Assembly: GCA_021613535.1 (NCBI GenBank)
Contig: CP075495.1
Location: 15,624,001 to 15,688,000 of the forward strand
Length of the DNA stretch: 64,000 nt
Direction of reading: 5' to 3'
Source: Adineta vaga
Lineage: Eukaryota > Animalia > Rotifera
Below, one piece after another: positions 2,627 through 24,823 of the stretch; positions within the stretch are counted from its first letter, which is position 1, and each line of letters begins with the position of its first letter. A program made the translations under genes and the position numbers. The notes beneath the pieces were generated by a model, which was not told the DNA's origin, ran no database searches, and was given only the letters and a program-made list of their open reading frames with translations.

Positions 2627-3747
2627 ATGAAAATGTCTTTAAACAATACAATATTAATTGTTCAATATAATATAAATCGTTACGTTTGTCCAATTTTATT
2701 AATATTTGGTATTATTGGTTGTTTACTTAATATTTTACTTTTTTCACAAAAACAATTTCGAACAATTTCATGTTGTACATGTAAATTATCTATTTTATCT
2801 CAAGATAACAATTGTTTTGTTTATTTTAAAGATTTTCTTGCTGCATCAATTCCAATGTTAATTTTAGTTTTTATTGGATATGGATCATATACCTATGCTG
2901 GATATTATTCAAATCTTCAATATAAAAATATTTTATTTTGTAAATTTCGTGGTTATATTGGACAAGTATTTCAAATGATGTATCGTTGGTTAATGACAAT
3001 GGTTTGTATTGATCGATATATTGTTTCATCAACAAATTTTCATTTAAGAAAATTTACAAATCTACAACGAGTTTTATCAATAATTATTAAAATAATAATT
3101 CTTTGTTTTATTTTACCTTTACATAATTTAATATTTTTAAATCTTCGTAAAGGTTGGTGTTTATATTCAACAGCTTCTTATGCATTTTATCATAGTTTAT
3201 TTACATTTATATTTATTGCTTTTCTTCCAATATTAATTATGTTTACATGTACAATATTTATTCATCAAAATTTAACATTAAAACGAATTCGTCGACAAAC
3301 AAATCGATATTATCAACAAAATTCTTCATTACATCATACTCAAGATAATCAAGTATTATTTATTTTATTTATTCAAATTATCTTTTATATTATTTCAACA
3401 ATTCCATGGATGATTTTATTATTATATGCACCATATACATATAATATTAAAAATAAATCAATAAATCGATTTCTAATTGAAATGTTTATTGGTTATTTAA
3501 CAGAATTAAATGTTTATTTATATCCAACATTATCATTTTATATTTATATCCAACATTATCATTTTATATTTATACATTAACATCAAAAACATTTCGTCAT
3601 GAACTTATTCATATTTTATATTCTTTATTTACAGGAAGAAGAAATCATTCACAAAATCAATTAATATCATTTTCAATGATTAATGAAAATAAACTTAATT
3701 CTCAATCAATCGAAATGGAAAGAATCTTTGATAAACATGTTGTCTAA
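2627..3747 (+). CDS. Class A-like orphan GPCR with its C-terminus frameshifted by a 26-bp tandem duplication
   Basis: Seven hydrophobic segments with CKFRGY and CIDRY. In-frame intron at 2781-2831. Bases 3515-3540 are repeated at 3541-3566; removing one copy restores FYIYTLTSKTFRHEL and a stop at 3745-3747. Confidence 0.85.
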
Positions 3748-4813: not shown

Positions 4814-7800
4814 CTATCTATCGAGATTTATCTTTTCCTGATTCAATTGGCAATTAGTAAAAGAATTACAAGGATAAAATAAATGAATTTTTTCTCTTTG
4901 ATCTTTAAAAGTCTCAATTAACTTGTTACGCTTTGATTTTGAAATGGATAGTTCCAATTGTCCTTTTCCACCGTACACTACAATGGTATCTTTTTTGTCT
5001 ATAACAGCAGTTTCTCTTACTAATGTCAACTTTGTTATTGCATAATACCAACAATCATTGTCCTCAGTTATAAACTGTTGAATTAATTGCTCCTCAGACA
5101 CGTTTTTTAAACAAATCGATGCGAATTTTGATTCACAAAGTTCTAAGATCTTACTCGAACCTAATTCTGAAAAAATTTCAACTGAATTCAAATTTTTTCC
5201 AATTAATTCTGCAACATCACGTGAAACCTGACGATCGTCTCCATTAAGCGGAAGAATCAGTTTACTGATCGCTACACTAGTTAGCTTTTCTTTCAATCGC
5301 TGAATGAGAAGACTCATATTGGTTCTCACCTGAACCTGTTTATCAACCAATGCATTCACTATCCTTTCGATGCCTTCGGTGATCAGAATTTTTTCGTTTA
5401 CAGAAAAAAGAGCCATACATGCCCTCTCTCTGATTTTCGAATTTTCATCATCGAGTGCTTTTATAAGCTTATTGATTACTTCAGTTGTCGCGGCTTTTTC
5501 TCGCATACATCCAACCAGAAAATATGCTGAATCTCGAACATGTATATTTTCATGGTCTAATATATCGATCAATTTAGGAATCATCTCAGATCTGGTTGCT
5601 TGTTCACAGATACTCTGTATAGCAGAGCATGCACAATTTCTGACATTTGCATCTTCATCTCCTAATACAAAGATGAGATCGTCAATTATCCAAGATAACG
5701 ACACTAATTTACTCCATAGCCAGAGTACCACATGCTCTTGCTCTAACATACACATCTTGATCTTCTAATAATTTGACAACCTTTTCAATCACTTCTGTAG
5801 TCGCCGCTTTTTCGCGCATATTTTCAAGAGCTTGACACATAGAGTCTCTCACTCGTGGATTCTTATGTTTCAATAACTTCACTATTTTGCTGATCACTTC
5901 AGTGGTTGGTGTTTTTGCACTTATTTTGATGATAGCTTGACATGTATCTCTTCTGATATCTTCATTTTTATCTTTTAATAGATTTATCAACGCATCCATT
6001 ATCTCAGTCGTTGCTTCTATTTTTCCTGCCGTACAAAGGGTATTAAATGCAACGCGCCTAACAACAAAACTATTGTCGTTGAATTTCTGCTTTAGTTTCA
6101 TAAGCACTTCGGGTATTTCTTGTGTTGCAAGCATTCTTCCTGCTGCTTCACATGCACTAACTCTAACGCGTTCTTTCTCATCATCTAATGCATTCAACAA
6201 TATGTCATTTATTTCCATTATCTGTACTTTTTCTCTCATTTGTACAAAAATGTTACATGCACTGGCTCTAACGTATTCATTATCAGCTTTAGTTGCATTT
6301 TTTAGTAAATTTATTGTTTCAATTGTCGCTGCTTTTGCACCAATGTTCCCGAGAGCAAAATAAGCATTATCTTTCAAAATAATATCTGTTTCTCTTAACG
6401 CAACTAATAACATACTAATAGCTTCAGTTGACAGTGTTTCTTTACTCACTTGTCTGAGAGCAGAACATGCAAATACTCTGACAGGGAATCTACTGTCTCT
6501 CAATGCTTTCTCTATTAATTTATTAATTACATAGGGCATGTCTGCTTTTTCACCAATATGACCAAGAAGGATACAAACATTTTGTATAACATCTTCTCGG
6601 CTATCTTCTAATAAATTCACTAATTTACGAATAATTTCATTTGTCGCTAGCTTATCATTTAACTTCATTAAAGCATCATATGCATTACTCCTAACACATT
6701 CGTTATCTGCATGAAGTGCATTTACTAATATGTTAACTATTTCAATTGTAATTACTTTTTCGGGTATTTTGATAAGAATAAATAATGCATTTGAACGAAT
6801 ACTATGATTCTTATTTTCTAATACTTTTATTAATTTACTAATAAACTCTGTCGTCGCTACTTTTCAGCTACTTGTCCAAAGAATAACACGCACTACGTCT
6901 AACATTTTCCTTTTCATCTTCTAGTAAACTTATTAATCTCTTTACTACCTCAAGTGTTGCTGCTTTTTCACCAATTGTTCCTATAGTATCACATGCATAC
7001 ATCTTAACTTGATCATTGGTATCATTTAATAAAATACTTATCGAACTAATGAGACGATCCGGTACATTTGAAATATTTAATGAACATATAAATATCAACA
7101 CTTCCATTTTGACATCTACCTCATTGCTATGTAACAGAGCAGTCAGTGTATTGATTATTATTTCTTCACATATTACAAATGGTGCTTTACGCAATGCTTG
7201 TGATAAGTGTTCTAGAACAATTTTGTTTTTTCTTAGTAAATTATAATGCATATATACAGATATTGGTAGAAGCAAATCATGTCGCCGAATAAAATTGTAA
7301 TCCAAAGATATTTCTCCAAGGCAAATTATAATAAGTTCTATGTGTCTTAAACCAACTAAATCCAATGGTTCGTTTAGAATATGATTCCAAAAGATGTTTA
7401 AGGATGTCGTTTCATCATTTTCAATAAGTAAACCAGCCATAAAAGTAAATAGCAATGCATATCGTCGGTTGTACTTCTGATTTTGAATAAATTCGATAGC
7501 TTTTTCTGTAGATGATCCTTTGAGAATATTAGTTAAATATCGTGCTGCAAAATATTCTTGAAAACTAAGATGAACAAAATAATATTCTTTATTCATTTCA
7601 ATTTGAGTACCAACTCCTTGTTTGGTAAAACATTTAAGAATACCAATATTGAGGATATGTGGATGATCTTGTGAATTGATATTAATATCTTTTAAAGTTT
7701 TTTTAAGTAGAATAGGTTTTATAATAATAATATTGTTTTCCATTGCAGTAAAAGCAAGTTTTTCTAAAAATGTTAATTCTTTTATACAACGTTGATAAAG

Positions 7801-9515
7801 TTCATCTTCGGATAATTGTGAAATCTTATCATTTGATGTTTTCAAATAACGACGACATAACCATTCTGTTATCATATTATACAATGTTGTTATTGATAAT
7901 TGTTCTGTTTCTGACCAATCTTGATTACTACAAAGACTACAAATTAATTCTAAATTTACTGGAATATGAGCAACACCCCAGATACTTAGATTTGATTTTA
8001 AATATTTCATTAATGTTTGATTTTTAACAATTGCATCATCTAGTTCATCTTTCATTTGATCAAAAAATTGTTGTATATATTGACCAATATTTTCATCTGT
8101 AAAACCAGTAATTTCCATTTGTACACCATATGATAATGTATTTAAATATGGACGTGATGTAACAATATGATGCGGAGTTTTAAGTAACTTCTCCAATAAC
8201 TCTTCTAAATGTGCTGGTACATTTTGTATGATTTCATCATACCCATCTAAGATCCAAAGGGTCTTTTTAACGTCGAACTGTTTTTCCAACAGTACATTTT
8301 CCCTTTCAGAAAGTTCATATGAGAACACTTCTTTCTTCAACAGATCAAGGAGGGAGTAATTGTGACCAGATGTTAATGGAGGATAACGATTAGCGGTCAA
8401 ACGACGTAATGGAATCAGAGCAAGTAAGTCATATTGCGACCAAAATGTACCTTTCGCCCATTGATAAGTGATATAACGACAGAATGTTGATTTTCCAATA
8501 CCAGCTCGACCAAATACAAGAATTTGTTTTGTTTCTTTCTCGCAAGATTGAAAAATATTTTGAATATCTATTGGAGTCTTCGCACCATAGATTTCTTCAT
8601 AAGAACTCAATATACTATCACTGTATGCAGCATTACGCAATTCATATTCTCTTTTGTAATGTTCTTGAGATGTAACTACTGACAAATTTATATAACTTTG
8701 TTCGATTGGAAATGATTTCGCTGGATTTATTAAACGTTCAATACGACTATTACACAGATAATTTTGTTTGATTGTTTCAAACAAATATTTTGATTTTAAT
8801 TCTATGGCACTATAAAAACGATTTAACAAAATTCAATTATGTTCATGTAGACTTACTTTTGTGAACTGATTTCTTCTAAGTGAAGAATGATATGATCTGA
8901 CAGAGGGAGTGATTCATTTTTACGGCGTACACGAGATCCAGGCATAAGAATAACTTCTTGTTCATCGGCATTCATGGAAAAGGATGAAATATCTTTACCA
9001 TTGATAACATCAATAGCAAATATAGTACCTTTATCACCTAAAAATGGTTTAATGATATTAAGTGCCTTAGAGCATGAATTGACACTCCACCAATATTGGA
9101 TATCATTTTCAACGAATGTTAAACTATCATCGTGACTAACTCCTCGCCAGACAGTTGCCCTCATTGATGGTAATTTTTCAAGAGCTCTTATAAAGAGTTT
9201 TAAAAATGCGAGCCATGGTTTTAATGTATTATGATCTTGAGCACGAAGAACTTTGTTGAAATGATCATAAACTGGTGATGGCATAGAATAAAGATATATT
9301 GCTGCAGATTCATCGAGTGTTAGTATATTTGAACTACGATTGCATTTATCTTTTGCTAATTTGACATAATTCATAACACGAGAGATGAGAGGAGTGACAT
9401 TCTCTAATGCTTCTTCTATCGACAGAACTGGTGAATCATCAAAAAATTGGAATATTGGATTTTGATTGATTTTTTCGAATTCCGAAGAAGTATTGTTTAC
9501 ATAACGATTATTCAT
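4814..9515 (-). CDS. ART-NACHT-HEAT NLR-like protein (about 1550 aa if repaired); frameshifts near 6860-6880 and 5715 (pseudogene or consensus error)
   Basis: ART motifs VWRGV, SVNSCS, DEQEVILMPG. A phase-2 intron at 8810-8856 (GTAAGT...TATAG) fuses the ART in frame to the NACHT (GRAGIGKST, WILDGYDE, VTSRP, FVHLSFQEYFAA). Roughly 17 HEAT repeats of about 39 aa follow, running across ORFs 6868-8829, 5709-6668 and 4814-5755. Confidence 0.85.
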
Positions 9516-10738: not shown

Positions 10739-11812
10739 ATGTCAAACATTACCATCGTTGAATGTCAACGATCAATTTTTCGAACAATTATATTTAATTT
10801 CTATGCTATTATTCTTATTCCATCATTATTATGTTCATTATTTATTTTTTACAATTGTATTCAAATACCTCAACTACGTAATCATCCTCCAAATCGTGTT
10901 GTACTCATTCTACTCGTTTTTTTATTTATTCAAGTATGTTTTGAAAATATTTTCAAATTGACATCATCTTTATTTAGCCTGATTAAATCTATGAAGCATT
11001 TTGAATTAGTAAATTGTTTTGTTTTCTCTCTGTAGGCTTTATTCGACATACCATTTCGCATGATCTCTCTTTATCAAGGTAAAGTACCGATTCAAAACGA
11101 AGCTTTCTGTCGATTTTGGTATCTTTCCAATGTAATAATCAATATAATAGGCTTACATCTAATGGCTTTGTGTTCGATTGAACGATATATTCTTGTGTTT
11201 CATCATAGATTTTTTATTCGGTATCGTTTCTATGTCTCTACTGTCCCGATCCTTATCTGCATCATCTATCCAACTGTATGGTATATCACAATCGAAAATA
11301 CTTCCTGGTGGTGCACTTATAAGCCTGATTATTCAGCAGATGGATGTGGTACACCTTGTTTTCTAACCAATTCGATTTTTCATTTGGGTTTTGTAATATT
11401 GACGCATCATCTTTTACCCGTGTTCATTACGGTCTTCTTCAATCTCGCTTTAATGGTTGTTATATTTCATAAAAAAGCAAAAATGAAACGCAATAATTCT
11501 TGGCGTAAAAACTTTCGTATGACAAGTCAACTACTCTCAATAGCTTTTTTCTATCTTATTGTATGGTTGCCACATTGTATCTTCGCTTCATTTCCGTTAT
11601 TTACAAAAGGTAGTCTATCGATCACAGGAAGATTGTTTACCGTGGAATATTTTGCAAATCTCACACCAATTTTTACATGTCTATGTCCATTCATATCATT
11701 AATTGCTCTTTCTCATTTACATGACAAAATCAAACGAGGAATCGAAATCTATTTAACATGTTGGAAGAAACATACGGCCTTAATATTTCCTGAAACAAAT
11801 CATGTAAAATAA
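10739..11812 (+). CDS. Class A-like orphan GPCR, 2 exons
   Basis: Intron 10934-11035 joins LFIQ|ALFDIPF in frame. FCRFW, CSIERY and VWLP motifs; seven hydrophobic segments. Confidence 0.85.
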
Positions 11813-12565
11813 TGAACAAACTTATTCATATCGTCAAGTATATCGACAAAAACATCTTCTTTTTTCTTTGATCTTCAGACTTTATTCTTATCTATCTGTA
11901 TAAGCGTTTTGTCTCATTGTTTCATTCTTAAGAATTCGAATGATCATATTGTTTGTAATTACTTGTAAGTCTGACAATTCAATTATACATAAATAAAGAC
12001 AACAAAAACAGACATAAGAACGAAAATGATTGTGTAGAAAATCTTGAGGATGTAGATTTGATGAAACCAGATCAAAATGGATATTTTGAATTCTGTTTAG
12101 ATGATTTAAAATCTAGTGTCAAGAAATGATTGTTAGTTATATTATGATATGAACTGTCGAGAAAAGTTATTTCTTGTTCGAAAGAAATAAAATGCTCTTT
12201 AATAAATAAATAACAATGTCGGTAATACAACTAAAGATACCTGTTTAGATTGACGATGAAATATTTGAAGATTAATCATTAAAATATATTGACTTTCTTT
12301 AGATCTAAATAACAGATTTTATTTATTTATTTATTCTTTTTATTCGAATATTGTTAACGTCAATGATTATTACTTTCTAACACTATCTATTGTACACATC
12401 TTTTCTTTTCCTTCATTCCCTCTCAAATGTGTCTCTCTATACTCCTTGTTTACAAGAGACTACGATACGCTTGATTTATCATAGGGATATTTCTCGAAAA
12501 ACATATTGAAGGTTCGAATATTCTTTATTAAAATAAATAAAAATGAATTATTTTGTTATTATTTA

Positions 12566-13280
12566 TTATTTGAAATCATGTTTTTTCTTTGAATTTTTAA
12601 ATGTTTCAATTTCTTCATATGTAACTAAATTAGTAAGTCCAAATTTATTTAAATAATCCAAAAGAGTATGATGTGCAGCACCAGCTCGACTTGAATATCC
12701 CGAAGATTCACTAGTCGAATTACGACAAAATATTCTTCCATCCCATAACCAACTTAATTCAGTTAATTCACCTTTAACTTGAACTGTACAAGTATCATTA
12801 TTATGTAATGTTATTTGATTAAAATCATTCCATTTGCTTAATTTTTGGTATTGATTAGCAACGATATCAAGAATGCCCATCCATTTAGCGTCTCCAGTCT
12901 TTAATTCGTCCGATAATTCATGTGCTAATGAAGCTATATTAAATGAACCTTAATGAAAAAGAATATAGAAATATTATTTGATAAGTTGAAGACATTTTTC
13001 TAAACAAATTCTTACTTAAATTTTTAGATTTATCAATGAGAATCGATGCAATTGGTGCGATTGTTGATAAAGATTGAGATGATTGTTTTTTCGTACTTAT
13101 TTTTATTGCTATAATAGTTAATAAACCAATTAATAAAATAAAAAATATTGAAATAATGATAATTATAATTATATTAGTTCGACGTGAATATCGTCCAAAA
13201 TATACACGATCATCTCTATGATTTATCGAATTCTGTGAATATTGTGTTAAAGGTTCATCTAAATTAACGTCGTCTGTCAT
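12566..13280 (-). CDS. Type II membrane protein with a C-terminal anti-lipopolysaccharide factor (ALF)-like domain, about 215 aa
   Basis: Exon 1 has RYSRR followed by a poly-Ile TM and a Ser/Thr stalk. Phase-1 intron at about 12949-13015. Exon 2 has W...ITL..C-x20-C (CTVQVKGELTELSWLWDGRIFC) then SSRAGAAHHTLLDYLNK...NLVTYEEI, matching the ALF C-terminal pattern SRSG..EH..RDFV..A...GLIT..EA. Confidence 0.75.
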
Positions 13281-13409
13281 TTATCTTAATACGTATTCTT
13301 TTTTGTATGTTGGAAATTTCCGTTTGTATTAATATATGTAAATAAAGGTAATATGATTTATTTTTCTCATACGTAATTAACTTACCTAATAGAAAGACAA
13401 AATTTCGAA

Positions 13410-15719
13410 ATGCAATTTGATCGTGTGAAAAGAATCTTTCTCGTATCTGATTCGGACATTAGAAGAAGTGAAGAAAATACAAATGAACATACAAATAATT
13501 CATCTATCAATAATAAATGTCTCCAAGGATTGATTCTAATTTGGATTGATGAACATGCAAAAAATTATTCACTTAATTCATTACGAACAAAAGCAATTCT
13601 TAAAGAAATAAGTGATAATAATTGTTTATTTATTAATGATATTAATGATTTATCAACAATTATTCAAAAACAAAAAGAAGAAAACAAAGAAATATTAATT
13701 ATTATGGGAGAATCATATGCAAAGAATCATTTAAAAAACGAAATAATAACAGAAAAAATAATTATATTTTCTCCAAATTATCAAGACAAAGATGATTTGA
13801 AAAAATTGAATTCTAATATTTTAAATATTTGTACAAATTTTGAAGAATTACAAAATATTTTAGAAAATAATTGTGAATCATTATCATTTGGTTTATTTAC
13901 TAATCAAACAATGGAATCTTTTAGACCATTAACACCATTAAAAGGTGCTGATAATTGTAATTCATATTATGATTATATGTTATTTATTGAAATCTTAAAA
14001 GATATGCCACAAACAAAAGAATCCAAAGATATTATGTTAAATAAAGCAAAAGATTATTATGAAAAAATCGAAAAAAATTCTAAGTATCCAACAAAGATCG
14101 AAAAATTTCGAAATAAATACATATCAAATGATGCTATTCGTTGGTATCAAAAAGATTCATTTGTTTATCGTATAATTAATCGAGCATTTCGAACAAATAA
14201 TGTTCAAATATGGTATTTATTTCGTTATTATATCAATGATTTATGTAAACAAATAGAAAATATTCATAAAATTCAAAATATTCAACAATCTCTTAAATTA
14301 TATCGTGGACAAATTATTTCAACAAATGAAATAAAAATTTTACAATTAAATCCGAATTGTAAAATTGCAATGAATGGATTTTTTTCCACATCAAGAAATG
14401 AAAATGGTGCTGAAGCATTCATTGCGGGAGGAATGAATACAAATAATTATAAAATTGTTTTATTTCAAATTTTTGTTAATACATCTCAACTTAAAAATAT
14501 TAGTTTTGTTGATGTGCCTTTAATAACTAAAAAATTTGAAGATGAAGAAGAAATTTTATTTAATATTGGAACAGTTTTCAAAATTATTAAAATTACTGAA
14601 GGTTTAGAAAATAATCCTTGGCAAATTGAAATGGAAGCAACAGATGAAGGATTAGATGAAATGAAGAAAAACATAAATTTAGCAAAAGATAAATTTTCAT
14701 ATGGAAATATAAATTTATCATTTGGTCAATTATTAATTGAAATGAATCAATATATTAAAGGTGAATCATATTATCAAATGCTTTTAGATATTTTACCTAA
14801 ATTTCATAAAGATCGATCATCTGTTCATGATCAACTTGGAATTTTATATATGCGTTTAACTGATTGGAAAGAAGCATTTAAACATTTTCAAATTGCATAT
14901 GAAATAAAAAAGAAAAAATTTCATTTAAATCGTCAAGAATTATCAATAACACGTAATAATATTGGAAATTATTATCTTAAAATAGGAAATTATGATCAAG
15001 CACTTCGATATTATATAAAAGCATTACGTTATTCACCAAATGAAATAAATAAAATCGTTACACAATTAAATATTTGTTCAATTTATATTTTAAATAAAAA
15101 TTCTCATAAAGCTTATCTTTTAATTATTGAAATAGAAAATATTCTTAGAAAAAATTATTCATCATCTTATATTGAATTAATTAAATGTTATCTTTTACTT
15201 GGAAATATTTATTTTGATCAAGAAAAATATTTTATTTCAAAAGGATATTATGATCAAGCATTGAATATATCTCAAAAATATTTAAATATTAATCATAAAT
15301 GTCGAATTAATTCTTTATTTATTTATATTGATTTTTATAAAAAACAAAATTTAAATAAAGAAGCAATAGAATTTTGTCAAAAGAATTTTAATGATTATAA
15401 ACAACATTTATTATCAAATCATATAATAAATGCTTATTTTTTAATGAAATTTGCAGAATTATATAATGATAAAGATGATTATAAAGAAAAAGAAAGTGTT
15501 TTAAAAGAAGCATTAGTTATTTTAGAAGAAAATTTTCATTTAGAATATGAAACAACAGCAAAATGTTTAATAAGTTTAGCGAAATTTTATTTAAATAATA
15601 ATGAAAAATTAAAAGCATTAGAATATTATAAACGAACAATTGAAATCTATGAAAAAATTTATCCAGAAAATCATCAAATTATTCAACAAACAAATCAATA
15701 TTTTAATCATATCATTTAA
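13410..15719 (+). CDS. ART-TPR protein (N-terminal LIWID domain, R-S-E ADP-ribosyltransferase, TPR repeats)
   Basis: Uninterrupted 769-aa ORF with WYQKDSFVYRIINRAFR, LYRGQ, FFSTSR and DEEEILF, followed by TPRs such as NNIGNYYLKIGNYDQALRYYIKAL. Confidence 0.9.
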   Translation: MQFDRVKRIFLVSDSDIRRSEENTNEHTNNSSINNKCLQGLILIWIDEHAKNYSLNSLRTKAILKEISDNNCLFINDINDLSTIIQKQKEENKEILIIMGESYAKNHLKNEIITEKIIIFSPNYQDKDDLKKLNSNILNICTNFEELQNILENNCESLSFGLFTNQTMESFRPLTPLKGADNCNSYYDYMLFIEILKDMPQTKESKDIMLNKAKDYYEKIEKNSKYPTKIEKFRNKYISNDAIRWYQKDSFVYRIINRAFRTNNVQIWYLFRYYINDLCKQIENIHKIQNIQQSLKLYRGQIISTNEIKILQLNPNCKIAMNGFFSTSRNENGAEAFIAGGMNTNNYKIVLFQIFVNTSQLKNISFVDVPLITKKFEDEEEILFNIGTVFKIIKITEGLENNPWQIEMEATDEGLDEMKKNINLAKDKFSYGNINLSFGQLLIEMNQYIKGESYYQMLLDILPKFHKDRSSVHDQLGILYMRLTDWKEAFKHFQIAYEIKKKKFHLNRQELSITRNNIGNYYLKIGNYDQALRYYIKALRYSPNEINKIVTQLNICSIYILNKNSHKAYLLIIEIENILRKNYSSSYIELIKCYLLLGNIYFDQEKYFISKGYYDQALNISQKYLNINHKCRINSLFIYIDFYKKQNLNKEAIEFCQKNFNDYKQHLLSNHIINAYFLMKFAELYNDKDDYKEKESVLKEALVILEENFHLEYETTAKCLISLAKFYLNNNEKLKALEYYKRTIEIYEKIYPENHQIIQQTNQYFNHII

Positions 15720-15888
15720 TTTTAGAATTTTTCTATTTTTTATATAAAAATAAATAAATCAAATCAAATCAAAGATAAAATCGTTATTCGTCGATATTTT
15801 CTGCTTATGATATGAAAAAAACGTGTCAGGTGATTCATTGTAATAAATCATGATATTATTTGTTTATATCGATCTTATTTTCAAATCT

Positions 15889-16565
15889 ATGTCTGCAGTT
15901 TATACACGAGGAGGTTGGCCTTCTATTCCAGATGATTCTCTGATCATTCTTAATGATTCTTCATCAAATGAACAAACAAATATTTTCTCATTTATTAATA
16001 TTTATAATCAAAATTCTTCAATATATCAATATAAATTCATAATGATCATTATTATTATTATTATTATAATCTTTATAGTTTTATCAATATTTTTTATGAA
16101 ATTCTTTCATATAACAAAACAACCATTGACATCAAATTTAATATTATTCAATATATCTGAGAATTTCAGTATGAAAAGTTTATTTTTAACTTCGATTCAA
16201 AAATAATAAACTTTCTCATGTTATTTACTTTAGAAAGACCATCAGAAGTTAAATTTAAGGTCGATATAAATTCTGACATCAATTCATCAAATCCAATAGA
16301 TTCGGAAATGTTTAATTGGATGAATTATAAAAATATAACTTTATTCAATGAAACATGTGCATCATATGTTAAACTTTTTGCATCTGGACCAATGACAAAA
16401 TGGAAAAGTAGTTTTGAATGTCATGAAGATGGTCCAACTGGTTATGGAAAACATGTAGATAATCAACAATTAGCTGTTATTATTGCTATTGAAGATTATT
16501 TAAAGAAAACAAATCAATCTACTTTACTAACATATGAACAAATACAACAATTAACAATAATTTAA
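15889..16565 (+). CDS. Second type II membrane ALF-like paralogue, about 203 aa
   Basis: Poly-Ile TM in exon 1 and a phase-1 intron at 16169-16233. Exon 2 has W..YKNITLFNET, then C-x20-C (CASYVKLFASGPMTKWKSSFEC), then AIEDYLKK...LLTYEQI. Collinear with the 12566-13280 protein. Confidence 0.7.
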
Positions 16566-16978
16566 TCGAATTATTCTTGGTAGTTTTTAAAATATTCTTT
16601 TAAATGTTAACTTGCTCCATCTTCAATTACATTATAACGAAGTTTTTGTACAATAATACTCTTTAAAAAAAAAGAAGAATACGATTACTTCAACTTTAAT
16701 TCAATTTATTGTTTTATGCTTCAAGGTATTAGTCAAATCTTTTATTTCATGAAATATTCAACGTCAAAGTTAGAAGAAAGAATAGAAAGGTATAATATAT
16801 AATTCGAATATAAATTACCGTATTATGTCGTAATAAATCAGATAGATATTCTAAACCTTTTTATCATCGATTTGATTATCTCTAAGAATTATTGTTGTGA
16901 GTGGATGTGAAAATAGAAACAAATTCATATTCGAATAAATCCATGAAAAATTCTATTATTATTGAGATTCAATTTCGT

Positions 16979-17321: not shown

Positions 17322-17927
17322 TCAAACTAATCGTAAGAGATTTCTATCTGATAATTCTCTTCCAATATAACCCATAACAACATTTGAAATATCCCGTTTT
17401 TGTATAATAGCTGCTGCACCTGCACCCGCACCACCAACAACTGCACCACCAGCAGCTCCTACTGCTAATGCTGCTGCAACTCCAACATTAACACCCGGAA
17501 CTAATAGAGCTGCTCCAGCAACTGCTCCTCCGGCGACAACTCCAATCCCCATAGCAGCACCAATTCTTCCCCAGTTAACTTGTCTAGTTTGTATTGCAGA
17601 ACAATAAACAATATCGTATTTACCATTTACTTTTCTGAATGTTAAAAATACTTTTTTGAATCCAGTTTCACTCGGTACATTATGATCTGAATATCGTGCA
17701 CCTTTATCACCAACTAATCCTGATCGTTTTAAAAGATTTTTCAAATCATTATCCGTAACTCGGCTCATGAGTGTTTGAAGATCATTATCATCAATACCTT
17801 GATATGTTGCAAAATCAAAAACAAATGATTCTTGTATCATGGAAAATACACCTGCTGTGCTTTTGACTTGATCAGTATATTTTGTTACTTCTTCACGTTG
17901 AATATCATGAATAGGAGCGACCGACAT
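17322..17927 (-). CDS. Unknown 201-aa protein with a long Gly/Ala-rich (glycine-zipper) hydrophobic segment
   Basis: Intact ORF with about 55 aa of G/A/V-rich sequence. Paralogous to 18298-18984 (SAIQT...W motif). Confidence 0.85.
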   Translation of the reverse strand: MSVAPIHDIQREEVTKYTDQVKSTAGVFSMIQESFVFDFATYQGIDDNDLQTLMSRVTDNDLKNLLKRSGLVGDKGARYSDHNVPSETGFKKVFLTFRKVNGKYDIVYCSAIQTRQVNWGRIGAAMGIGVVAGGAVAGAALLVPGVNVGVAAALAVGAAGGAVVGGAGAGAAAIIQKRDISNVVMGYIGRELSDRNLLRLV

Positions 17928-19214: not shown

Positions 19215-19838
19215 TCAATAAGAAAAATTGAATTTTTTTGATTTTGTCTTTGATACAATATGTTTTAATTGTCGTCGTGCTTTTTCTGATAAACTACAAT
19301 GTTGTAATGAAAGAAATTTTAATGTTTGATTTTGTTCAAGAATTTCTATAAGAATTTGTAATGATTGATCTGTTATAAATTTATTAAATGAAATATATAA
19401 TTTTTCTAATGAAGAATTTGATTGACAAAGAATTTTTGCAAATAATTCAATACTTTGATCAGTAATACCAGTATTATGTAAAGTAAGAAATGTTATTGTT
19501 TGATTTATTTGAAATAAACGATATGAATGTTCAATACCTTTATCACCAATATTGAAATTTCCTGAAAGACCAAGATATTTTAATTGATTTGTTTCTTTAA
19601 TTAATTGATTAACAAGTAATTCAATTCCAATTGATGTTAAATAATTATCACGTAAAATAAGACGAATACATTTCTTTTTTTCATTATGAAATATTTGTTG
19701 ATTAATTAATTTTATATTATTATCAATTATTTCTAATGAAGATAAATTTAAAGTTTCATTAAGATTATCTTGTTCATATTCAATAAGTTTTTCTTCTAAT
19801 TTAAAATTTCTTTTCATTTCAACAACAATTGTTAAATC
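19215..19838 (-). pseudogene. 3' part of an RNI-type LRR gene, truncated at its 5' end
   Basis: LxLxxNxI...GxxxL repeats. The reading frame runs into the hairpin motif at 19839. Bases 19728-19838 are duplicated at 29413-29524. Confidence 0.75.
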
Positions 19839-19896
19839 TTGAGGATGTGGGTGGGTGGGTGTGGATGAGGAGAAGATACCCACACCCACACCCTAC
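19839..19896. repeat. Telomere-repeat-like hairpin at the LRR breakpoint
   Basis: ttgaggatgtgggtgggtgggtgtggatgaggagaagatacccacacccacacccta. Confidence 0.8.
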
Positions 19897-23213: not shown

Positions 23214-24823
23214 AAGCGGGAATCAAAAGTTTAACACATTTTTTGTTAGTCGATTTTCTACATCAAGAGTCTTCTCTTAGCGACATCTATAAAACTCTTT
23301 TGATAGCTTTCATAACGGAACATAATATTAGTATGCTAAGATCTCAGAAGAAACTATTTTTATTTATTCAGAAAAAAAAATTTTTTTTTCATGTGATCAA
23401 AAGTTTAACACTTTTTTTTCGAATATTCGTATTTTAAAAAACATTTTCAAAAAACAGCTTTTGCCTACAGAAAAAGTAATTTATAATTTCATAAGAAGTG
23501 TCCACCTTTCGCTGCTAGACATTTTTGAATACGTTCAGGCATTGATTGGACCAATTTGAGGCATAAATCTTGATCGATAGTGTTCCATTCCTCTTGTAAA
23601 CGTTCCTTCAAAGCAGCCTTTGAATAAATTGGTTTGGCAGCTAGTTTCTTATCAATAATTGACCAGAGCATCTCGATGGGATTTAGATCTGGGCTCTTTG
23701 GAGCCCAGTCAAGAACATTCAGCTTCATTTGACGAATCTTTTGGTTAACGATTTTGGAGGTATGCCAGGGAGCCAGGTCCTGTTGAAATATTATTTCTTT
23801 TTTCTTTGGAATTTTTCGAATGGATTGCTTCAATTCGTGTTCCAACACATCACAGTATAAATTACTATTCATATTTTCTGTGTAAATCTTTGCTGCTGTT
23901 GTTCCAGCACCGGAAATTCCACCCCAGATGCCGACCTTACCACCATCACCTGTGTTAGTTTGTTCCAAACATTCTGGAAGAAGTTTTTCTTTGTCTAAAC
24001 GCCATATTTTGCATAGATTTTTTCGTTTTAACACGTAAAATGTCGATTCATCAGAAAAGATCACCTTTCGCCAATCATCAGGTGTCCAACTTGAATACTG
24101 AGTACACCAATCAATACGTTTTCGTCGATGTTTGGCCGTTAACCATTGTTTTTTTAATTTCACGACATATTCATAACCCAAATCTTTCAGATATCGACGC
24201 ACTGATACCACTGAGACTGGATTTGGTAAGCTAGTATTTAATTCAGATGTAACTCTGCTTGCACTAATTCGAACATCACCACGAATCAGTTTCTTCAAAT
24301 AATGAATATCACCACCAGTAATTTTTTTTGGACGTCCTGAACGTTTCATATCATTATAATGACCATGATTTTTGAATTTCTTGATAGCATTATGAATACA
24401 ACGTAGAGATATGCCGAGTTGTATTGAAATATCGATCTGTTTAATACCAGCATTGTGAAGGGCTACTATCTGGGCCCGAACAAAAGGATTAACAGGTTTT
24501 TTACCCATAAACAAATTAAATAATTCAAAGAAATTGAAGTATATTTATTAGTAGAAAAAAACAATAGTCAAAGACATACTGTATCCTTTGTCTCCCAGAG
24601 GAGAAAGGGCTCATTCGAAAAAAAAGTGTTAAACTTTTGATCACATGAAAAAAATATTTTTTTTTCTGAATAAATAAAAATAGTTTCTTCTGAGATCTTA
24701 GCATACTAATATTATGTTCCGTTATGAAAGCTATCAAAAGAGTTTTATAGATGTCGCTAAGAGAAGACTCTTGATGTAGAAAATCGACTAACAAAAAATG
24801 TATTAAACTTTTGATTCCCGCTT
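23214..24823 (-). mobile_element. Tc1-family transposon, IR/DR type, apparently intact
   Basis: TIRs of about 211 bp (23214-23424 and 24613-24823, 2 mismatches seen), flanked by TA on both sides. atcaaaagtttaa is repeated at both ends of each TIR. Confidence 0.95.
23489..24508 (-). CDS. Tc1 transposase (DD34E)
   Basis: Paired-like HTH with GRPKK, then FSDES, QQDLAPWH and SPDLNPIE, with 34 residues between the second D and E. No stops. Confidence 0.95.
   Translation of the reverse strand: MGKKPVNPFVRAQIVALHNAGIKQIDISIQLGISLRCIHNAIKKFKNHGHYNDMKRSGRPKKITGGDIHYLKKLIRGDVRISASRVTSELNTSLPNPVSVVSVRRYLKDLGYEYVVKLKKQWLTAKHRRKRIDWCTQYSSWTPDDWRKVIFSDESTFYVLKRKNLCKIWRLDKEKLLPECLEQTNTGDGGKVGIWGGISGAGTTAAKIYTENMNSNLYCDVLEHELKQSIRKIPKKKEIIFQQDLAPWHTSKIVNQKIRQMKLNVLDWAPKSPDLNPIEMLWSIIDKKLAAKPIYSKAALKERLQEEWNTIDQDLCLKLVQSMPERIQKCLAAKGGHFL

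Follow-up and report, generated by a model that had tools for sequence, protein, structure and literature searches.

Anti-lipopolysaccharide-factor-like proteins with a predicted membrane anchor next to an ART-TPR gene in the rotifer Adineta vaga

Two genes in a stretch of 64,000 nucleotides from A. vaga (contig CP075495.1, positions 15,624,001 to 15,688,000; hereafter the window, in which all positions below are counted) encode domains of the anti-lipopolysaccharide factor (ALF)/scygonadin fold, as supported by the PF11630 HMM, a profile-profile match and AlphaFold models. These genes, here called copy 1 and copy 2, are probably old ALF paralogues in which an anchor exon has replaced the signal peptide, the displayed ectodomain serving, while tethered, to recognise or capture its ligand. 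Both would belong to a rotifer PF11630 subfamily in which a separate 5' exon encodes a short tail, a single signal-anchor helix and a stalk rich in Ser/Thr, and would be joined to the ALF exon across a phase-1 intron that is conserved. We infer a type II (N-in, C-out) topology for the products, predicted to be glycoproteins that cross the membrane once and presumably display the disulphide-closed beta-hairpin domain either at the cell surface or inside the lumen of a vesicle. There, the ectodomain would bind a microbial envelope glycolipid or glycan and would not act as a membrane-disrupting cationic peptide. What is new is the anchored architecture, together with its conservation, and not the presence of a PF11630 domain in rotifers, since some rotifer proteins are already tagged PF11630 in the databases and UniRef names the Brachionus calyciflorus protein P0010 'Anti-lipopolysaccharide factor'.

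Gene models of the two copies

The initial annotation of this DNA had described, for both copies, an N-terminal tail, one transmembrane (TM) helix, a stalk, a phase-1 intron and a C-terminal C-x20-C domain, and each of these elements was present in its place. The features of copy 1 are:

12506..13386, minus strand: transcript; 5' end of the RNA contig at 13386, poly(A) added at 12506
13016..13280, minus strand: coding exon 1; 36-aa N-terminal tail, TM helix and Ser/Thr-rich stalk, ending in phase 1
13104..13172, minus strand: transmembrane signal-anchor; residues 37–59, Kyte-Doolittle mean 3.36 over 19 aa
12949..13015, minus strand: intron of 67 nt, GT..AG, phase 1, from RNA contigs
12566..12948, minus strand: coding exon 2 including the stop codon; ALF/scygonadin domain
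12725..12790, minus strand: Cys-x20-Cys hairpin; net charge −1, preceded by an N-D-T sequon

The TM exon and the ALF exon of copy 1 (ATG at 13280; coding span 13280..12566, minus strand, two exons) are joined in polyadenylated RNA. The RNA contig (X1 record 1) consists of blocks 13386–13014 and 12946–12506, and the intron was skipped in contigs of X1, X2 and X4 (joint 12946>13014, cut +2, CT..AC on the plus strand). The contigs thereby span the very junction at which the initial annotation had allowed that transcripts might contradict its model. The splice sites are A/GTAAGA (donor, after 13016) and TTAAG/ (acceptor, before 12948), and the poly(A) is seen in the loose ends of the X1 and X3 contigs at 12506, which are plus-strand T runs. 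The spliced protein equals the public model I4U23_010693 (215 aa) and is identical to the public protein P0001, the exon 1 product making up residues 1–88; the N-terminus is confirmed by public model and RNA. The TM helix is flanked by five Arg on its N-side and three Lys on its C-side.

Copy 2 (15889..16565, plus strand) starts with the ATG at 15889 or an alternative ATG at 15850, and has the following features:

15889..16168, plus strand: coding exon 1; tail with a GWPSIPDD motif, TM helix and short stalk, ending in phase 1
16036..16104, plus strand: transmembrane segment; Kyte-Doolittle mean 3.76 over 19 aa
16169..16233, plus strand: predicted intron of 65 nt, GT..AG, phase 1, outside RNA contig cover
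16234..16565, plus strand: coding exon 2 including the stop codon; divergent ALF domain without the long N-terminal helix
16356..16421, plus strand: Cys-x20-Cys hairpin; net charge +2, preceded by an N-E-T sequon

The exon junction of copy 2 is a prediction from comparison with related genes (donor CA/GTATGA after 16168, acceptor TTTAG/ before 16234). RNA pieces in this region lie at 16349–16620, and no RNA contigs were found over 15773–16348, which includes the junction. The TM segment has one Lys on its N-side and two on its C-side, which makes the positive-inside rule ambiguous. The gap in RNA cover, the PF11630 score below threshold (see below) and the ATG that copy 2 and its relative L010 both keep a few codons upstream of the acceptor would all suit a copy 2 that is not TM-anchored in vivo, either because translation of the ALF exon by itself starts at the in-frame ATG at 16218 or because the gene is decaying. 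We consider this improbable. In A. vaga, L010, L030 and L031 the ALF exon is preceded by a B-type TM exon with the shared motif G-x-P-x-x-P-D, and at the end of L038 a B-type TM exon stands alone; phase-1 donor/acceptor pairs occur in the four B-type genes scanned; the Cys pair, the Trp and the sequons are intact; and the exon-2 ORF by itself has no signal peptide despite its disulphide domain.

Family membership, fold and charge of the ALF domain

The Pfam profile PF11630 (Anti-LPS-SCYG, 100 positions) matched exon 2 of copy 1 with 26.2 bits (cut-off 25) over profile positions 8–98, and exon 2 of copy 2 with 14.4 bits (E 0.043, below the cut-off) over positions 17–97. P0020, a relative of copy 2, matches PF11630 at E ≤ 0.01, and a profile of copy 2 plus P0020 aligned with a profile of secreted rotifer ALFs with an hhalign probability of 96.8% (E 2.5e-10). 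With copy 1 as the phmmer query against 1.8 billion proteins, the same copy 2-like P0020 was retrieved at E 4e-5. Since PF11630 aligns end to end on both second exons and copy 1 leads to P0020, the likeness of both copies is beyond chance. The profile matched 25 of the 26 aligned relatives (best E 6e-23), and nine loci in the A. vaga genome score above the Pfam cut-off, with a top score of 57 bits. The C-x20-C spacing is exact in both copies, and the Cys residues are invariant over the 26 aligned relatives, as is a Trp. Exon 2 of copy 1 continues after the hairpin with SSRAGAAHHTLLDYL...NLVTYEEI, and that of copy 2 with DYLKK...LLTYEQI. The tail motif that the copies had been said to share is present in both, but K and L[LV]TYE are separated by five residues instead of four.

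In the AlphaFold models (domain pLDDT 83.6 for copy 1 and 82.7 for copy 2), both Cys residues lie on adjacent strands, and the disulphide itself is predicted. For copy 1, the model shows four strands and two helices plus an N-terminal helix broken into two parts; that of copy 2 also has four strands and two helices, with an N-terminal helix of just 4 residues. The structure ranked first by Foldseek in the PDB was shrimp ALFPm3 (2JOB) for both models (E 0.011 and 0.023, TM 0.43–0.53), which, together with the PF11630 match of copy 1 above the cut-off, answers for copy 1, in favour of the ALF fold, the check that had been proposed. For VIA against 2JOB, Z was 5.8 with an rmsd of 2.8 Å over 70 residues, values with which dsRBD folds tie at Z 6–6.8; the modelled likeness to 2JOB is modest. 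In an ESM Atlas search, the arthropod ALF cluster was the first row returned.

Copies 1 and 2 have in common with the classical ALFs (ALFPm3, 2JOB; PF11630) the domain family, the 20-residue two-Cys hairpin, a sheet of four strands with two helices after it, and the motif S-R-x-G-A-x-E/H-H ... D-F/Y-[VL] after the hairpin. Classical ALFs, however, are secreted, mostly cationic peptides of ~100 aa with a signal peptide, encoded in three exons (PMC6213531), whereas copies 1 and 2 have two exons, one of them for tail, TM helix and stalk, anionic ectodomains and a conserved sequon before the first Cys (Cys1). Instead of a classical signal peptide and a secreted ~100-aa peptide, a 36–49-aa tail, a ~23-aa hydrophobic segment and a stalk were found, which supports the view that the N-terminal signal-anchor exon stands in for the signal peptide in both copies.

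The hairpin charges given in the initial annotation proved right, but the whole domain cores of both copies are anionic, with a pI of 5.85 (copy 1) and 5.17 (copy 2). In most secreted rotifer members the net charge of the hairpin is +4 to +6. Seven charged residues of ALFPm3 bind lipid A (PMC3701609); two of these seven positions could not be mapped, and each copy keeps 2 of the 5 mappable ones in its alignment to ALFPm3. Neither copy has the cationic lipid A-binding hairpin/sheet of a classical ALF. With their incomplete site and anionic ectodomains they resemble the shrimp Group D ALFs, which are anionic, poor LPS binders (with such a site, LPS is bound ~20-fold less well; PMC3701609); Group D ALFs are secreted, unlike the anchored rotifer copies, and the likeness is known at the level of family membership. 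The anionic ectodomains and the loss of most basic hairpin residues point to recognition or capture rather than membrane disruption, and a pattern-recognition or antimicrobial role at the surface, as originally suggested, may apply to both proteins.

The anionic cores and the loss of most basic hairpin residues would also fit a role outside immunity (adhesion, the binding of the animal's own lipids or glycans, or a part in reproduction like that of crab scygonadins), with the immune-like neighbourhood being coincidental; scygonadins too fall within PF11630, and copy 1 is expressed, at a contig depth that is moderate, in three runs, which come from two studies and were picked for holding this stretch. 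This seems unlikely to us: the sole documented activities of the ALF family are microbial ligand binding and killing (PMC6213531, PMC3701609), genes for ART-NACHT-HEAT, ART-TPR and LRR proteins adjoin, and copy 2 is a fast-evolving paralogue whose lineage-specific divergence (branch length 1.19 in the tree) fits a conflict-driven gene.

The anchored clade and the secreted rotifer ALFs

In the tree, a single bipartition (100/97) unites the sequences that are anchored or have no signal peptide; within it, L016 is the partner of copy 1 (99/97) and L010 that of copy 2 (100/100). A TM exon was found upstream in 10/10 clade genes with readable upstream DNA, which come from at least four other metagenomic rotifer-like genomes, and a strong phase-1 donor and acceptor in 8/8 clade genes scanned for the intron. 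An N-x-T/S sequon, which speaks for the proposed topology, stands directly before Cys1 in 11/12 anchored-clade sequences versus 1/22 of the secreted ones listed, and the median core pI is 7.9 in the anchored clade versus 9.2 in the secreted rotifer ALFs.

The secreted ALF-like proteins (from A. vaga L001–L008, A. steineri P0021, A. ricciae P0059 and B. calyciflorus P0010) lie on the opposite side of the 100/97 branch. Unlike the anchored genes, they are single-exon, with a hydrophobic N-terminus read as a signal peptide, and mostly cationic; many have an extra Cys pair, and the sequon before Cys1 is absent. Both kinds are nevertheless members of one phylum-level family, with the hairpin consensus K-G-R...K-W-x-W-D-G-[RK]-F, parts of which are retained in copy 1. 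The A. vaga genome has at least 8 such secreted-type loci, and at least ten PF11630-type genes in total. [quoted passage not shown] The anchored clade, in which a peptide would have become a membrane-tethered ectodomain, is a plausible case of an effector fold turned into a receptor-like or capture molecule.

The anchor might instead mark a pro-form only, a protease cutting the stalk and releasing the anionic ALF domain as a soluble factor that would act like a classical ALF. The stalks are Ser/Thr/Lys-rich, poorly conserved and 20–30 aa long, the N-terminal part of the model has a low pLDDT, and every other family member is secreted. Yet no conserved dibasic or other cleavage motif was visible in eight stalks, a signal peptide, as in the secreted paralogues, would be a cheaper route to secretion, and the position of the tail/TM exon and the intron phase have been kept across deep divergence. 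Release of this kind is therefore a minor contender, and stable tethering is the reading that we prefer.

The ART-TPR gene between the two copies

The two ALF genes flank a third gene, with these features:

13281..13409, no strand: divergent intergenic region between the ATGs of copy 1 and ART-TPR, 129 bp
13410..15719, plus strand: ART-TPR gene; single 769-aa ORF, no signal peptide
14130..14642, plus strand: ADP-ribosyltransferase domain; R (YRGQ), S (FSTS) and E-x-E (EEEILF) motifs visible
14823..15677, plus strand: TPR repeat region with Pfam TPR matches

The product matched PF03496 with 28.0 bits (cut-off 23.4) over residues 201–430, PF01129 with 22.1 bits (cut-off 22.3), TPR_12 with 89.6 bits and TPR_10 with 81.2 bits. 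With its catalytic motifs, it is an R-S-EXE ADP-ribosyltransferase plus TPR protein, which bears out the ART-TPR annotation; its RNA coverage is low. The narrow spacing to copy 1 was also as first described, and copy 2 begins 130 or 169 bp beyond the ART-TPR stop, depending on the ATG chosen. The copy 1 RNA contig begins (at 13386) 24 nt from the ART ATG, and the ART contig (X2 record 8) starts at 13406.

The ART of the window is sister to that of L030 at 97/97, to the exclusion of its nearest A. vaga paralogues. In L030, the orthologous ART-TPR gene lies head-to-head with an anchored ALF gene, ~200 bp apart, at 39% protein identity, and the gene orders of A. vaga and L030 are one inversion apart. 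Copy 1 and ART-TPR have the 129-bp divergent promoter region in common, their pairing is ancestral for part of the group at least, and functional coupling of the two is possible. The anchored ALF genes in L031 and L038 are in tandem, without an ART-TPR gene nearby. The bracketing of ART-TPR by two ALF genes, as proposed initially, holds in A. vaga but not in three relatives that have the ALF pair in tandem. The suggested co-regulation draws on the near-abutting 5' ends and the head-to-head orthologous pair in one distant relative, but the arrangement is absent in two relatives.

The chances are slightly better than even that the adjacency is inherited synteny or local rearrangement without functional or regulatory coupling to the ALF genes. 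The ART-TPR family is huge (914 first-look candidates in the A. vaga genome), the tandem pairs do without it, a single inversion accounts for the difference in order from L030, and contig depth, a poor measure, is 25–35 for copy 1 versus ~3–4 for ART; against this stand the orthologous pair retained in L030 and the closeness of the copy 1 RNA start to the ART ATG. Far less probable, and in our view a long shot, is a two-part receptor-effector module, in which the ALF ectodomain would sense a microbial envelope ligand, the TPR array of the cytosolic ART-TPR would read the short acidic/proline-rich cytosolic tail of the anchored ALF, and the ART would modify host or pathogen targets. If true, animals would have a novel type of innate-immune receptor, derived from an antimicrobial-peptide fold.

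The neighbourhood is rich in genes of immune type, among them ART-NACHT-HEAT and an LRR ORF. Research on bdelloids asks how anciently asexual animals withstand pathogens, and the innate immunity of these rotifers is poorly known; a putative surface ALF with ART-TPR amid NACHT, LRR and ART genes is a concrete, testable candidate for a part in it.

Structure and transcripts of the two ALF genes

The two membrane-anchored anti-lipopolysaccharide factor (ALF) genes, copy 1 and copy 2, and the ADP-ribosyltransferase-TPR (ART-TPR) gene between them lie in a window of chromosomal DNA from the bdelloid rotifer Adineta vaga that corresponds to G000:C2:15624001-15688000 in the genome assembly. Reading of the sequence and its open reading frames returned all the elements that the initial annotation had listed for both copies. 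The intergenic distances were also as claimed, with 129 bp separating copy 1 head-to-head from ART-TPR, and 130 or 169 bp from the ART-TPR stop to copy 2. The common C-terminal motif had been described with four residues between K and L[LV]TYE; the actual count is five.

Features of the locus (window positions)
13280, - strand: start ATG of copy 1 (sequence and ORF reading)
13016/12948, - strand: copy 1 splice sites, donor A/GTAAGA after 13016 and acceptor before 12948, phase 1
12566, - strand: stop of copy 1 exon 2, which carries C-x20-C and the tail SSRAGAAHHTLLDYL...NLVTYEEI
13410-15719: ART-TPR ORF, 769 aa, strong TPR_12 and TPR_10 matches (Pfam)
15889 (or 15850), + strand: start ATG of copy 2 (sequence and ORF reading)
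to 16168, + strand: copy 2 exon 1, plan as in copy 1
between 16168 and 16234, + strand: predicted copy 2 intron, 65 nt, GT..AG, phase 1
16234-16565, + strand: copy 2 exon 2 (sequence and ORF reading)

Exon 1 of copy 1 encodes a 36-aa tail, a hydrophobic segment of ~23 residues (Kyte-Doolittle value 3.36) and a Ser/Thr-rich stalk. RNA contigs from three public runs in two studies, mapped over 12300-16800, lack precisely the 67 nt of 12949-13015, a GT..AG intron read on the - strand, and have an A stretch following 12506; they thus represent spliced, polyadenylated RNA. The spliced product is identical to NCBI protein I4U23_010693 (P0001, 215 aa), which was also the 100%-identical match to exon 2 in the protein search; the proposed joining of the transmembrane (TM) exon to the ALF exon is thereby confirmed for copy 1. 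The spliced models were searched exon by exon, and P0001 was the sole whole protein used for copy 1. The longest contig begins at 13386, 24 nt from the ART-TPR start codon. Contigs of high depth (92-139, three runs) at 13212-13234 and 13666-13686 were rejected: they match over 21-23 nt only, with ~700 other letters between, and were judged to stem from an unrelated transcript that happens to match in low-complexity sequence.

For copy 2, the RNA contigs over 12300-16800 were limited to pieces of exon 2 and the 3' UTR (16349-16620). A word-indexed protein search with the 109-aa exon 2 gave no match; with an expected full length of ~200 aa or above, the target would be over 1.75 times as long as the query, so this blank carries no weight. 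No second genomic copy (ohnologue) of either anchored gene was found in the haploid A. vaga assembly. An in-frame ATG lies 4-5 codons before the predicted acceptor both in copy 2 (16218-16233) and in its metagenomic relative L010 (about 1831-1845), from which the reading is MLFTLERPS and MINTLERPS, respectively. This shared ATG may be chance or an alternative start yielding an isoform without the anchor.

Sequence and structural evidence for the ALF domain

The ALF assignment was assessed with sequence profiles and with predicted structures. Pfam PF11630 (Anti-LPS-SCYG) matched copy 1 exon 2 at 26.2 bits (cut-off 25, profile positions 8-98 of 100), so that the profile match expected for this copy was obtained. 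When the A. vaga genome was scanned with this profile in six frames, nine loci exceeded the cut-off, the highest with 57 bits and copy 1 the weakest. Copy 2 alone stayed below the cut-off (14.4 bits, E 0.043, profile positions 17-97), but a profile of copy 2 and P0020, the copy 2-like ORF of L010, aligned with a profile of 16 secreted rotifer ALFs at an hhalign probability of 96.8% (E 2.5e-10). With the copy 1 domain as query, phmmer run in full against 1.84 billion representative proteins gave 27 matches, including proteins of Adineta steineri and Brachionus calyciflorus, one of the latter bearing the UniRef name 'Anti-lipopolysaccharide factor', as well as P0020 (E 4e-5). PF11630 was matched individually by 25 of the 26 aligned sequences (best E 6e-23). 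A profile search with the secreted rotifer ALFs returned rotifer or metagenome proteins only, with no arthropod sequences among the matches. Two candidates were discarded and kept out of alignments and trees: P0008, a phmmer match in which 14 stretches looked ALF-like, proved to be a bacterial protein of the SprB-repeat/T9SS type, and P0019 is a repeat protein that matches the N-terminal helix only.

AlphaFold models on these alignments had pLDDT values of 83.6 (copy 1) and 82.7 (copy 2). The copy 1 model consists of an N-terminal helix, four strands and two helices; that of copy 2 has the four strands and two helices, with the N-terminal helix vestigial. Foldseek against 350,542 PDB chains placed shrimp ALFPm3 (2JOB) first for both models (E 0.011 and 0.023, TM 0.43-0.53), in line with the ALF fold that had been proposed, and an arthropod ALF cluster was the first row from the ESM Atlas search; an ESM Atlas feature search with P0001 gave no usable match. 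In VIA-align, 2JOB was recovered with Z 5.8 (2.8 Å over 70 residues, 24% identity). Because dsRBD-like folds tie with it at Z 6-6.8, the fold alone does not discriminate, and the argument for homology to ALFs rests on sequence profiles and modelled fold together.

A membrane-anchored clade among rotifer ALFs

In a maximum-likelihood tree of 38 domains, one side of a branch with 100/97 support holds all sequences with a TM exon or without a signal peptide. Copy 1 pairs with metagenomic L016/P0002 (99/97) and copy 2, on a long branch, with metagenomic L010/P0020 (100/100). Where other genomes have tandem pairs, copy 2 also groups weakly with the second gene. These relatives come from metagenome assemblies and are called 'rotifer-like' on the basis of the genes they carry, their short introns and a G+C of about 30-35%. 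An open frame with tail, TM segment and stalk precedes the ALF exon in all ten clade genes with readable upstream DNA, and a strong phase-1 donor (mostly A/GTAAGA) with an acceptor was found in each of the eight genes scanned for the intron. The first-gene TM exons of two relatives carry -STKK- or -RTKK- just past the helix, resembling that of copy 1, and the copy 2 tail shares a G-x-P-x-x-P-D motif with the second-gene tails of relatives. Among 12 anchored-clade sequences, 11 have an N-x-T/S sequon immediately ahead of the first Cys, versus 1 of 22 listed secreted ones; this sequon, together with the invariant Cys pair, argues from sequence that the ALF domain faces the lumen or exterior.

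The predicted introns range from about 46-58 nt up to about 809 nt. The longest, ~808-809 nt, occur in the copy 1-like and copy 2-like genes of one metagenomic relative (those in the other genomes are about 46-202 nt). They show no significant similarity to each other, so that no shared inserted element is indicated.

Predicted long introns
L010, about 1050-1860
L016, about 880-1690

At least eight further PF11630 loci (L001-L008, 33.9-57 bits) are present in A. vaga. The ORFs of seven of these (L001-L005, L007 and L008) were read through; each is one uninterrupted frame whose hydrophobic N-terminus was interpreted as a signal peptide, and thus the classical secreted design. The C-terminal tail of L007 is hydrophobic too and may be a GPI signal or a TM segment, and L006 contains an in-frame TGA.

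Examples of secreted-type loci (PF11630 scan)
G000:C1:14811061-14811300
G000:C6:3435945-3436196
G000:C4:9702402-9702674

Monogononts and arthropods have the secreted form, so the simplest view is that the anchored form is derived and arose by gain of a 5' exon, a direction that we infer, as the tree is unrooted. ALFs have been stated to be restricted to marine chelicerates and crustaceans, with three exons encoding a signal peptide and a mature peptide (PMC6213531, PMC3701609). In full-text searches no paper connected ALFs with rotifers or reported one with a transmembrane segment. Some rotifer proteins already carry PF11630 tags in databases, so the presence of the domain is not new to them; new are the anchoring of the domain to the membrane, a design that is conserved and has a single origin, the arrangement as a tandem pair, and the divergent pairing with ART-TPR, which is conserved in part. 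The anchored ALF finding is real and structurally well supported, with the function a putative one.

Charged residues of the hairpin and neighbouring strands give classical ALFs their binding to lipid A, lipoteichoic acid and beta-glucan, and these peptides kill microbes (PMC6213531, PMC3701609). In the secreted rotifer members the hairpin is mostly cationic (net charge mostly +3 to +6, range -2 to +6). The median core pI is 9.2 in these versus 7.9 in the less basic anchored clade, and both A. vaga anchored copies are anionic (pI 5.85 for copy 1 and 5.17 for copy 2). The opposite loop charges noted initially, -1 in copy 1 and +2 in copy 2, are correct, yet the whole domain cores are anionic in both. 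Each copy keeps two of the five LPS-binding positions that can be mapped (2JOB alignment, residue list of PMC3701609); in shrimp Group D ALFs, whose site is incomplete in this way, LPS is bound about 20-fold more weakly (PMC3701609). Given the anionic cores and the two retained positions, the best reading would be a tethered, glycosylated recognition or capture domain of altered ligand specificity, and not a membrane-disrupting peptide. Alternatively, the ectodomain may be shed from the membrane.

The ART-TPR gene and the surrounding locus

The central part of ART-TPR, scanned alone, matched PF03496 at 28.0 bits (cut-off 23.4); R, S-x-S and E-x-E motifs are visible, and the protein is without a signal peptide. 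The family is very large (914 first-look candidates in the A. vaga genome), so that adjacency alone would mean little. L030 is a 308-kb contig from a distant relative; there, an ART-TPR gene with 39% identity stands head-to-head with an anchored ALF gene at about 200 bp, with a second anchored gene in tandem behind the first. When the closest A. vaga paralogues are included in the tree, the window and L030 ART-TPR proteins come out as sisters (97/97), which indicates that the divergent pair was inherited. A single inversion of the block of first ALF gene and ART-TPR suffices to turn the L030 order into the bracketing one of A. vaga. In contrast, the anchored genes of L031 and L038 stand in tandem with no ART-TPR within 1.6-3 kb, and the short contigs L010 and L016 were uninformative or negative. 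The synteny looked for thus recurs in L030 and is absent from L031 and L038, and the ART-TPR link is conserved in part of the group only; the ALF genes may also be functionally uncoupled from ART-TPR. A repeat search around the locus gave AT-rich, chance-level matches only. An 18-nt inverted, 94%-complementary (AAAT)n-like pair (12315-12332 and 15748-15765) flanks the copy 1 and ART-TPR block; it is AT-rich, may well be chance and is too weak to support the inversion model.

Neighbouring features (window positions)
4814-9515, - strand: ART (PF01129), NACHT and HEAT ORFs in one run (Pfam)
2627-3580 and 11060-11812, + strand: two rhodopsin-type 7TM ORFs (domain match)
19215-19889, - strand: LRR ORF (domain match)
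23489-24514, - strand: Tc1/mariner-type transposase ORF (DDE_3, HTH_Tnp_Tc3_2; domain match)

The ART-NACHT-HEAT and LRR genes fit an immune context without proving it, and the anchored ALF proteins may instead serve a non-immune role. Downstream of copy 2, an RNA contig (record 11 of run X2) runs from 16789 into Gly/Ala-rich coding text matching the ORF at 17322-17927 (- strand), which gives this 'glycine-zipper' gene a 3' exon at ~16721-16789, convergent with copy 2.
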